From sequence record NC_041917.1: 64,000 nt of DNA; one strand, given 5' to 3'. Positions 54,084 to 57,872 of the stretch are shown here, piece by piece. The position numbers and the translations under genes are program-made. Position 1 is the stretch's first letter, and each line of letters begins with the position of its first letter. The notes under the pieces were generated by a model. It was not told the DNA's origin and ran no database searches. It saw only the letters and a program-made list of their open reading frames with translations.

Positions 54084-54140
54084 GGAATCTAGCAGCAACC
54101 ATAACCCAATCAAACTTTTAATTTGACAATTATGGATTCC
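54084..54140 (+). ncRNA. ACAGCAA-type element carrying only a Lys(TTT) anticodon stem-loop
   Basis: GGAATC/GATTCC, GCAGCAA, CCATAA/TTATGG, TCAAA-CTTTTAA-TTTGA. Confidence 0.7.
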
Positions 54141-54318
54141 CGTTATTTTTAAGGATGTGATATGTCTAAAGAACAAGATGATTTTGAAAAAGAATATCTT
54201 ATAAGTAAGCGTATTGATCCAAAAGCAACATTTTATATAAAATCTCGTAGAAAGAAAAATGGTTATAGAACTCGTGAATTGAATAATAAATTTCAAGAAT
54301 TTCTTAAACGATTTAAAG

Positions 54319-54410
54319 GGTAAAGTGGCAGAGCGGCTGAATGCAACCGCTTGGAAAGCGGTCAGGTTAGGTAATCCCTAGCCTCGTAGGTTCAAATCCT
54401 ATCTTTACCG
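54319..54410 (+). tRNA. trnS: tRNA-Ser(GGA)
   Basis: class II, ACCGC-TTGGAAA-GCGGT. Confidence 0.92.
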
Positions 54411-54462
54411 CAAAGTAATAACTCCTTATTAAAGTGAAGTACAAAAACAACAGGAGAATATT

Positions 54463-54819
54463 ATGTACGAGAAAGATGATGGTCCATTAACTGATGAACA
54501 AATTCGTATCATCCGTGAAATGAATAGCCATCTGAATCAAACTGATTTAGAAATTGATTTAAATTGGTTGAACAGTGATATACAAGGAAATGCAATGTAT
54601 TACGACTATTATTACAAAGTTGACGGTGACCTTCGTCGTTATACCAGTAATCAAGAGTTAACGGATGCGGAAATCAATAATATTTTTGGTGCAAGCAAAC
54701 AAGTAGTAATGCTTACTCCAATTGTATTTGAACGTGACGTAACTACTGAAGACAAATCTGGTAAAAAGATTAAAAGTACTGAAAAAGTACATGTTGGCTT
54801 CTTAGGATATGTGGAATAA
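54463..54819 (+). CDS. hypothetical protein
   Basis: SD AGGAG. Confidence 0.7.
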   Translation: MYEKDDGPLTDEQIRIIREMNSHLNQTDLEIDLNWLNSDIQGNAMYYDYYYKVDGDLRRYTSNQELTDAEINNIFGASKQVVMLTPIVFERDVTTEDKSGKKIKSTEKVHVGFLGYVE

Positions 54820-54821
54820 AA

Positions 54822-55508
54822 ATGTCAAAAAAGACTGATAAAGAAGTAAAAGATACAAAAGAAAAGTACACTGTTGTTAAACACGGCTCACTAACACTAG
54901 TGAATACACCAACAGTAAAAACTTTCTATATGAATGGTTCTATTGATCATCCTACATTAACTAAGTTCCAAAAGTTCTTAGAAGATACATGTACGGAAAA
55001 TAATAAAATTGATACCGAAGAAACTGAACGCAAAGAAAAGGATGAATTTAAAAAGATTCATGATCCTGAATCTAAGCCAGAGTTTGTTCCTGCTAAACGT
55101 AAAGTTGAGCGTATCAATCTGGTTATCAATAGTGGTGGTGGTTTAGTTGCAGTAATGCTAGAAGTTGTAGCACTAATGAAAACTTCACCAATTCCAATTG
55201 ATACCTACTGTTTTGGTTCTGCAATGAGTGCAGCTTTCTTTATCTTCTTACATGGCAAACGCCGTTTTGTTGGTGAAGGTGCCTCATTTATGACACATAG
55301 CATTGGTGCTATGGCATGGGATAATGTACCAAACATGACAATTCGTATGGAGTACTTGGTTAAACAAAACGAGTACGCACAACAGGAAATTGCTAAACGT
55401 ACTGGAATTCCTCTTGAAAAATTAAAAGAGAAAGAACATCTCGATTGGTACTTGACTGCTGAAGAAGCGTTAGATGTTAAAATCGGTGAATATTTGATCC
55501 GAGATTAA
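54822..55508 (+). CDS. clpP: ClpP-like (S14) protease
   Basis: INSGGG, GSAMSAA, FMTH and DWYLTAEEAL motifs. Confidence 0.9.
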   Translation: MSKKTDKEVKDTKEKYTVVKHGSLTLVNTPTVKTFYMNGSIDHPTLTKFQKFLEDTCTENNKIDTEETERKEKDEFKKIHDPESKPEFVPAKRKVERINLVINSGGGLVAVMLEVVALMKTSPIPIDTYCFGSAMSAAFFIFLHGKRRFVGEGASFMTHSIGAMAWDNVPNMTIRMEYLVKQNEYAQQEIAKRTGIPLEKLKEKEHLDWYLTAEEALDVKIGEYLIRD

Positions 55509-55519
55509 ATATAAATTCT

Positions 55520-55541
55520 GGATTCGAAAGAATCCTTTTTT
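55520..55541 (+). terminator. intrinsic terminator
   Basis: GGATTC-GAAA-GAATCC plus T tract. Confidence 0.75.
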
Positions 55542-55554
55542 AAGTGAGATGATT

Positions 55555-55779
55555 ATGGACAATCAACACAAACATATTAAAGGGTATCGTGACCTTTCAC
55601 AAAAAGAAGTGGATGCGATGAATGAGATTAAACAACTGGCTGCCACCATTGGAGAGTTGATAGAAAAACTTGAAAGTACTGAATCAGTAGATAAACGTTG
55701 GCTTGCAATTGCAAAGACGGATTTACAAAAAGGATTCATGTCAGCAGTACGAAGTGTGGCTAAACCAGATTCCTTCTAA
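55555..55779 (+). CDS. acb2: anti-CBASS cyclic-nucleotide sponge Acb2 homolog
   Basis: MDNQHKHIKGYRDLSQ.E...MNEIK and RWLAIAKTDLQ.G.M...R..A.P.SF signature. Confidence 0.9.
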   Translation: MDNQHKHIKGYRDLSQKEVDAMNEIKQLAATIGELIEKLESTESVDKRWLAIAKTDLQKGFMSAVRSVAKPDSF

Positions 55780-55788
55780 GGAACAAAG

Positions 55789-56169
55789 ATGTATACAACG
55801 GTTAATCATGCTGATATAATTGATGATATTATAACTGAAATACTTGAAATTTATACATGTCGAGTTGAAATTTATAAAGATGGTCATTTATTCACTCAGT
55901 ACGGGTATAATACTAAACATAATGTGAATTATCATATAAATGTAAAGTACTATAATGATAATCCAAGTAATGGTGATAAAGCGAATAGCTTAATGGTAGA
56001 ATTTAAATTTACCAATAGAGTTCCGAAGGGACTAAAAAATCATTACAAGTTATCTATACCTGAAATAACAAGTCTTACAGAAGAACGGCATTTTCAATTA
56101 ATGTTTATCACTGATGATATGTATTTGGATTATGAAGTTATAAATAAATTACGTACACATATTGTGTAA
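55789..56169 (+). CDS. hypothetical protein, EExxFQ paralog family
   Basis: LTEERHFQLM motif. Confidence 0.75.
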   Translation: MYTTVNHADIIDDIITEILEIYTCRVEIYKDGHLFTQYGYNTKHNVNYHINVKYYNDNPSNGDKANSLMVEFKFTNRVPKGLKNHYKLSIPEITSLTEERHFQLMFITDDMYLDYEVINKLRTHIV

Positions 56170-56177
56170 AAAAGTTT

Positions 56178-56232
56178 TAGAATCTAACAGCAATCAAAAC
56201 TCATTGGATATATGAAAAAAGATAGATTCTAG
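56178..56232 (+). ncRNA. minimal ACAGCAA element
   Basis: AGAATCT/AGATTCT flanks; TCAT-TGGATAT-ATGA hairpin; abuts tRNA-Ile(GAT). Confidence 0.65.
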
Positions 56233-56237
56233 TATTT

Positions 56238-56310
56238 GGGAATATAATTCAGTTGGTAGAATGCTCGACCGATAATCGAGTCGCCGCTGGTTCGAGTCCA
56301 GCTATTCCCA
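56238..56310 (+). tRNA. trnI: tRNA-Ile(GAT)
   Basis: CTCGA-CCGATAA-TCGAG. Confidence 0.9.
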
Positions 56311-56409
56311 CGAAGTAGTTCAGTACTGAAAAATGTACAGTGAAATTATTCAACACTATAGGTAGCACTTTGAATGAATCAGTAAGCCTATAAGTAACTA
56401 CAATAAATT

Positions 56410-56538
56410 TGGAATTCAACAGCAATTCACTTACTAAAAACAGCTACCTCACGGTTTGTAGGTTCAAGTCCTACCTTGTACTTTCGAGTACATGTGGTGA
56501 AAATGGTAAACACGGCTGTCCAAAAGAAATGAATTCCA
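56410..56538 (+). tRNA. circularly permuted class II tRNA (Leu TAA-like) inside ACAGCAA element
   Basis: order: TGGAATTCA, ACAGCAA, 3' anticodon strand ACAGC, variable arm, T arm, acceptor 3' strand, TTCG loop, acceptor 5' strand, D arm, GCTGT, TGAATTCCA. Confidence 0.75.
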
Positions 56539-56590
56539 GTATTAATTAAGACATAAATATTCTTATACACTTTTTTGTAAGGATATAATT

Positions 56591-57190
56591 ATGGAAATGA
56601 AAAAGTTGATGGAAGATATTTCTGCCATCATGGAAGGACAACTACCTGGTTATTATTATCATGGAAGTTCTGCCCCAATATCAAATTTTAGTGATGAGTT
56701 TGTTGGTAGAGGAAATGATGAATACGGTCCGGGAATATATTTTAGTTCAGTTCCAAATACTTCTATAGGTTATGCAAAAGATGGCGGTTCTAATGGAATG
56801 GTATATCAGTGCGAAATCAATTTAAGAAAAGAACTATCTAAAAAAACTAGAGTTAATAAAGCAGTACTATTAAAATTAATGCAAAATACACCTGATGAAG
56901 ATGCATATACTAACTGGAATGAAAATAAAAATGTTGCTTATAGAACAGCATTACAGGGTTATGTAGATGAAGGTAATATGTATGATGCGTTAATGGGTGT
57001 TTGGTACGATTGGTATAGAGAATATCCTGTTCAATTCGTGCGTTCACTAGTACAGTTAGGATATGATGGATACATATATACTTTTGCAAGCGGTGAACGT
57101 TTTATTATAGTATATAATCCAGCAAGTATAAAAGTTGTAAACACATTCAATCCAGAAGAAGCTATGCAGAAACTGATTGGAAGTGAATAA
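56591..57190 (+). CDS. ADP-ribosyltransferase-fold protein (polyvalent ART-like)
   Basis: YHGS..F, GPGIYFSS..A..YA and GYDGYI motifs. Confidence 0.55.
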   Translation: MEMKKLMEDISAIMEGQLPGYYYHGSSAPISNFSDEFVGRGNDEYGPGIYFSSVPNTSIGYAKDGGSNGMVYQCEINLRKELSKKTRVNKAVLLKLMQNTPDEDAYTNWNENKNVAYRTALQGYVDEGNMYDALMGVWYDWYREYPVQFVRSLVQLGYDGYIYTFASGERFIIVYNPASIKVVNTFNPEEAMQKLIGSE

Positions 57191-57197
57191 TAAGATT

Positions 57198-57317
57198 TGG
57201 AATTCAACAGCAAATCATTCTAAACCCGTAGCATGTCGTAGGTTCAAGTCCTACCAGTACTATCGAGTACTGTAGCTCAGTTGGTAGAGCAGCCACCTTA
57301 AAAAGAAATGAATTCCA
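57198..57317 (+). tRNA. circularly permuted class I tRNA inside ACAGCAA element (isotype unclear)
   Basis: T arm GTAGG-TTCAAGT-CCTAC, CAGTACT-ATCG-AGTACTG acceptor hairpin, then GCTC-AGTTGGTA-GAGC D arm; same flanks as 56410. Confidence 0.75.
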
Positions 57318-57348
57318 GTATTAATTAAAACAACATGAGTATAAATCA

Positions 57349-57798
57349 ATGTCTGATAAGCATCAATTTAAAGTAAACATCGGTGATTGGTCACAAGATG
57401 GTCATAATCAATATGATGTTTTAGTTCTTAACAGTACTAAACCAGTAGATGAAGTACAAAAAGCATTTAAAAAAGCTGCAACAGATTTACATTTACTAGT
57501 AAATGGTCGTTTTCTAATTGCAGATGAATTTGAAGATTGTAGTCTATCTGAAGACCATGCAGAAGTTCTTAAAAATGCAGGTGTAAAATTTGATGATTTA
57601 GTGTATAATGATGGCGATGATGAAGAACCAAATTATATTATTGAAGGTTCAAGTGATATGACTATCCTAGTGATGCGTATCGCCCAACTTGAATTGGACT
57701 TTGAATTTGAAATTACGAATGATGCAATTCCGAACTTTAACGGGTTCTGGACAGAAGAACAAATGCCATCAATCGGATATGGTTTGTATAACATATAA
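57349..57798 (+). CDS. hypothetical protein
   Basis: IGDWSQDGH phage motif. Confidence 0.8.
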   Translation: MSDKHQFKVNIGDWSQDGHNQYDVLVLNSTKPVDEVQKAFKKAATDLHLLVNGRFLIADEFEDCSLSEDHAEVLKNAGVKFDDLVYNDGDDEEPNYIIEGSSDMTILVMRIAQLELDFEFEITNDAIPNFNGFWTEEQMPSIGYGLYNI

Positions 57799-57807
57799 AA
57801 CAAGTTT

Positions 57808-57872
57808 TGGAATCTAGCAGCACCCATAAAATGAAATCAACTGTTAATTGAAAAATTCAAAAATGGATTCCA
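57808..57872 (+). ncRNA. ACAGCAA-type element carrying only an Asn(GTT) anticodon stem-loop
   Basis: TGGAATC/GATTCCA, GCAGCA, CCAT/ATGG, TCAA-CTGTTAA-TTGA. Confidence 0.65.

Follow-up and report, generated by a model that had tools for sequence, protein, structure and literature searches.

Why would a bacteriophage encode an anticodon arm without the tRNA that normally surrounds it? The question is raised by a 64-kb stretch of the genome of Serratia phage BF (KY630187 / NC_041917; 357 kb), a Rak2-like jumbo phage of the genus Eneladusvirus, in which two short segments display the anticodon stem-loops of tRNA-Lys(UUU) and tRNA-Asn(GUU). This stretch, hereafter the window, begins at position 248001 of the record and contains most of the tRNA region of the phage, for which ARAGORN predicts 20 tRNAs and Rfam the same 20 plus two more. 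A sequence-only reading of the window had interpreted both segments as anticodon-only cassettes acting as decoys for anticodon nucleases or modification enzymes, or as donors for anticodon exchange. The Lys and Asn hairpins are real and conserved, and they are the smallest members of a family of structured RNAs built on a common handle.

The Lys-type cassette covers 57 nt (54084-54140) and the Asn-type cassette 63 nt (57809-57871), both on the plus strand. The termini of each pair into an 8-bp helix, P1 (GGAATCTA with TGGATTCC; 54084-54091 with 54133-54140 in the Lys cassette), the 5′ strand of which leads into a conserved core followed by a hairpin with a 7-nt loop, flanked on either side by A-rich linkers. 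Both hairpins, TCAAA-CTTTTAA-TTTGA at 54110-54126 and TCAA-CTGTTAA-TTGA at 57837-57851, are found where the sequence-only reading had placed them. The tRNA-Lys-like gene (48647) and tRNA-Asn (58262) have the same loops, and D, T and acceptor arms are indeed absent from both cassettes. The proposed common scaffold also holds, but not its exact wording as ACAGCAA: the core reads AGCAGCAA in the Lys cassette (54091-54098) and AGCAGCAC in the Asn cassette (57816-57823), and the family consensus is RCAGCA(A/C). About 0.2-0.3 hairpins with such loops are expected by chance per strand of the window, and a chance CTGTTAA hairpin occurs inside a coding region at 42919. The folding energies of the cassettes are unremarkable when compared with shuffled sequence (z = -0.8 and -1.2 for Lys and Asn, respectively). 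We consider the cassettes non-random because of their position on the scaffold, their adjacency to a cognate tRNA gene and their conservation.

Conservation was assessed in related phages, among which Cronobacter phage GAP32 and Pectobacterium phage CBB (genus Mimasvirus) possess the same catalogue of elements as BF. Across seven phages, 49 of 64 columns of the Asn element are invariant versus 5 of 41 in its flanks, and the hairpin is also kept in an eighth relative, a 371-kb metagenomic contig with differing linkers. The Asn loop is canonical (U33, purine 37) and the same as that of the cognate tRNA in 8/8 phages, and the cassette lies upstream of tRNA-Asn in all four relatives checked (BF, GAP32, CBB and the metagenomic contig). 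The Lys hairpin, with loop CTTTTAA, is identical in BF, in Yersinia phages fHe-Yen9-03 and fHe-Yen9-04 (Yen9-03 and Yen9-04 below) and in Xanthomonas phage XaC1, which carries two tandem Lys cassettes with an identical hairpin and flipped P1 pairs (AGAATCTT/AAGATTCT versus GGATTCTT/AAGAATCC). This cassette sits directly 3′ of a tRNA-Lys-type gene in GAP32 and CBB, and adjoins a decayed copy in BF. When eight cassettes of the Lys and Asn types are aligned, 100% of P1 cells are paired and four of the eight pairs show compensatory change. The P1 covariation score reaches 0.415 versus 0.17 in shuffles (0/500 as high), and sliding the partner strand makes the signal collapse. The invariance of the Asn hairpin in eight phages and the identity of the Lys hairpin between BF, Yen9-03/04 and XaC1 bear out the earlier view of the cassettes as anticodon-stem-loop look-alikes on a shared scaffold, and show them to be under selection.

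The same scaffold recurs throughout the tRNA region. The pattern GAATYYARCAGCAA has 10 matches in the window, against 0.21 expected, and looser searches brought the total to 15 intact copies, which are all found on the plus strand, either between genes or within tRNA genes. Every member possesses a handle made of a P1 helix of 7-10 bp, a single-stranded RCAGCA(A/C)-n-AUAA segment 3′ of the P1 strand and an A-rich return strand. Eleven of the 15 copies stand alone, in the order P1 5′ strand, RCAGCA(A/C), 8-14 nt linker, cargo, A-rich linker and P1 3′ strand. Their cargo is of three kinds: a tRNA-like body (elements starting at 52561, 52861, 53234, 56411 and 57199, and a larger one at 53386), an anticodon-like hairpin (54084 and 57809) or a small CAT-loop-ATG hairpin (56179, 58421 and 59240). 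The tRNA-like body is itself arranged as an anticodon-type stem, a variable region, a T arm, an acceptor stem closed by a 3-4 nt loop, and a D arm. In the other four copies the P1 hairpin and core interrupt a tRNA gene as an insertion of 43-51 nt, placed after nt 28 or 29 in the 5′ strand of the anticodon stem, such that stand-alone and inserted handles are exact circular permutations of each other. The handle family is a set of modular non-coding RNAs embedded in the tRNA transcription units of the phage.

The four interrupted genes, all on the plus strand, are a tRNA-Pro(AGG)-like gene (29107-29223) with a 48-nt insertion at 29134-29181, between nt 29 and 30; a tRNA-Glu(UUC)-like gene (46918-47033) with a 43-nt insertion at 46947-46989 and the core variant ACGGCAT; a tRNA-Tyr(GUA)-like gene (47364-47489) with a 51-nt insertion at 47394-47444, in which P1 is capped by GAAA and the core reads ACAGCAT; and tRNA-Lys(UUU) (48567-48691), which encodes its CCA end and bears a 49-nt insertion at 48595-48643, separating nt 28 from nt 29 of the anticodon stem. 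Public records label the interrupted genes tRNA-Pseudo, tRNA-OTHER or, in relatives, tRNA-Phe, and leave the stand-alone elements unannotated. Handle junctions were positioned from structure before ARAGORN was run on the excised sequence; brute-force in-silico splicing scored by ARAGORN proved too permissive for defining them. Excision of 41-51 nt in silico produced ARAGORN-canonical tRNAs in 8/8 cases, namely Pro(AGG), Glu(UUC), Tyr(GUA) and Lys(UUU) of BF and the GAP32/CBB orthologs.

This outcome invites an alternative in which the handle is a protein-dependent intron. An endonuclease of phage or host origin would cut at the two junctions, cREC and a kinase would heal the ends and a phage RNA ligase would seal them, giving rise to tRNA-Lys, Glu, Tyr and Pro. 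The stand-alone elements would correspond to intron-exon units in permuted order, from which cargo is released or circularised in the form of circular anticodon hairpins or circular RNAs that resemble tRNAs. Besides the eight canonical products, insertion always at nt 28/29 or 29/30 is consistent with such a process, as is the exact circular permutation between the two forms, which recalls red-algal permuted tRNA genes. T4-type RNA ligases are present in the clade, and two genes for cyclic-phosphate processing lie directly upstream of tRNA-Lys in five phages, an arrangement that fits cut-heal-seal maturation. Other observations point in the opposite direction. Inspection of the predicted fold of 48567-48691 revealed no bulge-helix-bulge, a motif that would set the two splice sites in 3-nt bulges 4 bp apart: both junctions fall within an open multiloop that has a 0-nt linker 3′ of the hairpin, and no splicing endonuclease was found. 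As long as the insertion is retained, this fold stacks the hairpin of 3 bp on the 2 bp that remain without any 3′-strand linker, a continuous anticodon arm is kept and the handle emerges as a side arm. The distance from the core to the junction or hairpin varies from 8 to 12 nt, and intron-less paralogs exist for all four interrupted tRNAs (Lys, Tyr, Glu and Pro). A group I intron would be expected to bring a ribozyme of at least 200 nt into the anticodon loop, whereas these insertions measure 43-51 nt and reside in the stem. No intron or ribozyme family was returned by permissive Rfam E-value scans of three sub-regions (46800-47600, 52400-59400 and 57180-57340), the window as a whole having been scanned at gathering threshold. 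Hammerhead, hairpin ribozyme and k-turn structures were also considered for the core, and none fitted by eye.

Two further lines of evidence come from elements lacking a canonical anticodon loop. The body-only elements contain an anticodon-type stem of 5 bp that covaries and in which a C-A mismatch is conserved, and joining their ends in silico produces loops CTTACCC or CTTCCC in BF and CTACCAC in GAP32, which have no purine 37 and are not conserved. We rejected the possibility that the stand-alone tRNA-like elements are permuted decoding tRNAs, since the joined loops are neither canonical nor conserved. The same loops argue against circular joining as the fate of these RNAs. Moreover, the handle remains intact where the anticodon loop has decayed, as in a second Lys copy of CBB with a 10-nt loop and in the ortholog from Xanthomonas phage XbC2, in which no canonical stem-loop is discernible by eye. 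Survival of the handle past decay of the loop argues for a functional module rather than a discarded intron. Because of this persistence, the non-canonical joins, the variable linker, the intron-less paralogs, the continuous anticodon arm and the lack of a bulge-helix-bulge in the predicted fold, we favour a permanent handle and regard splicing of the four tRNAs as unlikely. We find it quite doubtful that the handle would, in a broader version of this scheme, be the recognition element of a protein-dependent splicing and circularisation system operating in a phage, equivalent to archaeal processing at bulge-helix-bulge motifs, that both matures the four tRNAs and makes exonuclease-resistant circular decoys for anticodon nucleases out of anticodon hairpins and tRNA-like bodies.

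The interpretation that we favour, to which we assign a probability of about 0.45, is that these elements are Y-RNA-like adaptor or decoy RNAs that retain their handle permanently. The handle would be a platform for protein binding, comparable to the stem by which Y RNAs bind Ro, and the part of tRNA on display would be a bait for proteins recognizing either tRNA shape or a specific anticodon loop. Interchangeable parts of four kinds are joined to it: a complete tRNA, in which the handle protrudes from the anticodon stem on its 5′ strand, a YrlA-like closed-acceptor body without anticodon loop, a bare anticodon stem-loop, or a small hairpin. Candidate targets of the bait are host anticodon nucleases, wobble-modification enzymes and the end-healing and ligation enzymes of the phage itself. 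The cassettes might then behave as decoys, competitive inhibitors or adaptors in a conflict of tRNA cleavage and repair, in which P1 could hold a nicked loop together for resealing. The handle carries anticodon loops for Lys UUU, Glu UUC, Tyr GUA and Asn GUU, together with an Ile GAU loop exchanged in Yen9-03. Lys, Glu, Tyr and Asn belong to the mnm5s2U and queuosine tRNA sets that are recognized by classical anticodon nucleases such as PrrC and those of the gamma-toxin and colicin E5 types. A decoy role for the cassettes, as had been proposed from the sequence, is plausible and would fit their setting among cREC, Acb2 and ART genes.

Several observations weigh against this interpretation. The short cassettes have little thermodynamic stability, with a stem of four A-U-rich pairs in the case of Asn, and the loops of the commonest short class are not canonical anticodon loops. 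Clean tRNAs after in-silico excision are also what a true intron would yield. Conservation of the loops across homologous elements, on which the sequence-only reading had staked its proposal, stands for Asn and partly fails for Lys, the loop of which is altered in GAP32 (CTTTTAC) and lost in CBB (CCTAACC). The Y RNA parallel is also incomplete: the Rsr-binding motif of YrlA RNAs (GNCGAAN0-1G) is absent from the full-length alignment with the YrlA model, RCAGCAA being found in its place, and no TROVE domain was detected among the five open reading frames (ORFs) of at least 379 aa in the window, the only ones near the size of Ro60, the genome beyond the window not having been scanned. Finally, in the minimum-energy fold of the Asn cassette the loop CUGU pairs with GCAG of the handle instead of presenting its own hairpin. 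The loop CUGUUA is complementary to UAGCAG of the handle (region 57816-57842), which reads UAACAG in GAP32 and Yen9-03, an A/G variation that preserves pairing with U. Since the minimum-energy fold uses this pairing between handle and loop, the Asn loop could be conserved for internal pairing and not for anticodon mimicry. Folding predictions suggest that the Asn cassette may switch between two folds. The downstream UCAA of the cassette can also pair with UUGA of the hairpin.

Alternatively, the conserved single-stranded RCAGCAAC-n-AUAA segment could be a regulatory seed, making these RNAs multicopy base-pairing small RNAs or protein sponges in which P1 and cargo serve only stability and processing, and in which the resemblance of the loops to anticodon loops reflects tRNA ancestry. 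The single-stranded core is the most conserved feature across members, not the cargo, which is very diverse and, in the short classes, mostly devoid of canonical anticodon loops. Such a model leaves unexplained the invariance of the whole Asn hairpin and that of the Lys hairpin in the distant phage XaC1. No target was identified, and TTGCTGT, the complement of the core, occurs just three times in the window. We judge a seed function to be improbable. Two other roles for RCAGCAA were rejected: the Glu-type copies do not keep the ARN frame of Hfq-type repeats, and the first position of a "specifier codon" for G34 anticodon loops would be the closing pair of P1.

Beyond BF, GAP32 and CBB, at least part of the catalogue is present in Yen9-03 and Yen9-04, Erwinia phage Kaldavass, Xanthomonas phages XbC2 and XaC1 and the 371-kb metagenomic contig, hence in at least two genera and unclassified relatives. 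Pattern scans of IMG/VR gave mostly chance single matches, several copies being found only in contigs of jumbo size, such as that of 371 kb. The family seems to be confined to the Mimasvirus/Eneladusvirus clade and its relatives, because no insertion-bearing tRNA was found downstream of the cREC homolog of Klebsiella phage Eowyn. In Yen9-04 and Kaldavass, but not in BF, the Asn cassette is immediately followed by an inserted HNH endonuclease gene.

One might object that the elements are functionless debris left behind when tRNA genes were duplicated and rearranged, or else repeats that act at the DNA level, for instance in homing or recombination. Decayed tRNA genes are abundant, as exemplified by that at 54006 and by the second Lys copy of CBB, and the HNH genes next to the Asn cassette would be in keeping with homing. 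Debris would hardly be under purifying selection as strong as that seen relative to the flanks, nor would changes in P1 be compensatory and tolerant of G-U pairs. All copies lie on the tRNA strand, and the catalogue is kept across the genera and relatives listed above. We consider this explanation very improbable.

The remaining proposal of the sequence-only reading was that the cassettes donate anticodons by RNA trans-splicing, here onto the body-only elements or onto the tRNA at 54006-54078 (plus strand). This tRNA, annotated tRNA-Ser in RefSeq, has a defective anticodon arm as had been described: it scores 36 bits with the Rfam tRNA model and is not called by ARAGORN. It is a decayed, anticodon-less ortholog of the insertion-bearing tRNA-Lys of GAP32 that has lost P1 and core by imprecise deletion. 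Body-only and loop-only elements coexist, and their similar P1 helices could pair in trans. In Yen9-03, the ortholog of the interrupted tRNA-Lys displays an Ile-type hairpin, ACT-ATGATAA-AGT (GAU), in a Lys-type body (L002:1690-1810). Judging from this ortholog, the anticodon hairpin appears to be a swappable module that has been exchanged during evolution, an event which DNA recombination explains equally well. The 5-bp stem of the bodies added to the 4-5 bp stem of the cassettes would make an arm of 9-10 bp, and the tRNA at 54006 is a decayed gene without handle, not a waiting acceptor. Because the stems sum to 9-10 bp and 54006 has lost P1 and core, trans-splicing is extremely unlikely, the least probable of the explanations considered.

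The other stand-alone elements also lie on the plus strand. That at 57199-57316 contains a YrlA-like tRNA-like domain (anticodon-type stem, T arm, AUCG-closed acceptor and D arm), folds better than shuffled sequence (z = -3.3) and shows compensatory changes relative to GAP32. The element at 56411-56537 carries a tRNA-like domain with a UUCG-closed acceptor and a long variable arm. A T arm and closed acceptor are found in elements 52561-52677, 52861-52978 and 53234-53346; the first has orthologs in GAP32 and CBB and an extended -10 promoter-like site at 52514-52543, and the last starts 5 nt past tRNA-Glu. The largest, at 53386-53538 (153 nt), bears multi-hairpin cargo. Of the short elements, that at 56179-56230 (hairpin CAT-TGGATAT-ATG) ends 8 nt before tRNA-Ile, that at 58421-58473 (hairpin CAT-TCGATTAT-ATG) ends 7 nt before tRNA-Gln, and a third member of the CAT-loop-ATG class occupies 59240-59294. 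A terminator-like hairpin, GGATTC-GAAA-GAATCC, followed by a T run at 55520-55535 has a stem identical in sequence to P1 of the handle and the same GAAA cap as the Tyr-type insertion. The tRNA at 41666-41741, called tRNA-Pyl by ARAGORN, has a CUA anticodon and is a potential amber suppressor.

Judging from predicted gene functions, the handle RNAs are surrounded by an island of anti-defence and RNA repair. A tandem pair of paralogous cREC_REC genes (47838-48203 and 48204-48560, plus strand; Pfam PF20274, E 6e-8 and 6e-11), predicted to process 2′,3′-cyclic-phosphate RNA ends, are those lying directly upstream of the interrupted tRNA-Lys in BF, GAP32, CBB, Yen9-03 and XbC2. cREC has been linked to RNA ligases (PMC7824862), and a cREC homolog adjoins an RNA ligase gene in Enterobacter phage FENT2. 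A gene annotated as hypothetical at 55549-55779 (plus strand) encodes an Acb2/Tad1-type sponge with the hairpin domain (PF24729, E 2e-19; anti-CBASS/anti-Thoeris). An ART-PolyVal ADP-ribosyltransferase gene (56591-57190, plus strand) is flanked by the elements at 56411 and 57199, both with tRNA-like domains and with near-identical handles. The ART gene is likewise bracketed by such elements in GAP32 (GAP32_436) and CBB (CBB_455), and the flanking RNAs may be functionally tied to the enzyme. The part of the window that precedes the tRNA region contains genes for a TelA-like protein (2891-4030), an ADP-ribosylglycohydrolase (11377-12369) and a NadR-like protein, cytidylyltransferase plus AAA_28 (16156-17214); genes of NAD and ADP-ribose metabolism cluster with ART.

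Phage tRNA clusters are usually viewed as aids to codon usage or as spares against tRNA-cutting defences. Here, a clade of jumbo phages keeps, under clear selection, a large set of RNAs in which one handle is joined to a bare anticodon hairpin, a tRNA body or a whole tRNA. Should the handle recruit a protein, these RNAs would be relatives of Y RNAs that are specific to phages, independent of Ro and equipped with programmable bait, and would offer an experimental route into how phages neutralise or repair the damage caused by anticodon nucleases. If it is spliced instead, it would constitute the first tRNA intron system of a bacterial virus to depend on protein. Under either reading, the current annotation of these phages misses or mislabels (tRNA-Pseudo, tRNA-Ser, tRNA-Phe) at least 15 RNA genes per genome. 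Rfam contains no family for the handle, and the element is undescribed in the literature searched, including the genome papers of CBB and of the Erwinia Eneladusviruses.

Among known systems, the YrlA or bacterial Y RNA-like RNAs (RF02553; Chen et al. 2014, PMC4201824) share with the handle RNAs an end-to-end stem, a conserved motif just past its 5′ strand, internal loops and a tRNA-like domain. They also have shorter relatives devoid of that domain (YrlB), are in some cases encoded by phages and are tied to RNA repair operons. At permissive thresholds, the YrlA model matches BF at 57231-57293 (40.3 bits, E 2e-6), as well as GAP32 (44.7 bits, aligned over its full length), XaC1 (40.9 bits) and CBB (31.4 bits), and the YrlA tRNA-like domain (T arm, D arm and closed acceptor) is present in 57199-57316 and its orthologs while absent from both cassettes. 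All matches score 31-45 bits, below the gathering threshold of 69 bits. YrlA RNAs carry the Rsr-binding motif near their 5′ end (PMC4201824) and have a Ro60/Rsr gene on the same strand within about 4 kb, and here no ORF large enough for Ro60/Rsr lies within 4 kb of the elements. We do not place the handle RNAs among YrlA RNAs because of the sub-threshold scores, the missing Rsr-binding motif and the absence of TROVE near the elements or among the five large ORFs of the window. YrlA RNAs also differ in being present in one or two copies as opposed to 15 per 64 kb, and no YrlA form has been described with a bare anticodon hairpin or inserted in real tRNA genes.

Permuted tRNA genes occur in red algae. 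Permuted and intron-containing tRNA genes of Cyanidioschyzon merolae and Archaea resemble the phage elements in having both an insertion form and a permuted form, in which leader and trailer surround a 3′-half/5′-half body, and in the non-canonical position of the insertion within the anticodon stem. They differ from them in that the phage handle lacks a bulge-helix-bulge, the acceptor linkers are just 3-4 nt long and the joined products have no canonical loop. The bacterial host has no known splicing endonuclease. The T4 stable RNAs species 1 and 2 (rnaC and rnaD) are, like the handle RNAs, small stable RNAs of unassigned function within a phage tRNA cluster, and rnaC ends in a T arm and an acceptor-like stem. 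No convincing homology to either was found; only the word CACAGCAG near the 3′ end of rnaD (L012:854-972) is reminiscent of the core. Another parallel is that of phage tRNAs turned against anticodon nucleases: Pnk and Rnl1 of T4 repair tRNA-Lys cut by PrrC, and the tRNA-Lys of T5 counters PARIS. The phages studied here share with T4 and T5 a heavy investment in tRNA-Lys-related sequences, adjoining genes for RNA end healing and an anti-defence setting, but where T4 and T5 deploy complete decoding tRNAs, BF and its relatives encode bare hairpins and tRNAs equipped with an extra arm of 43-51 nt.

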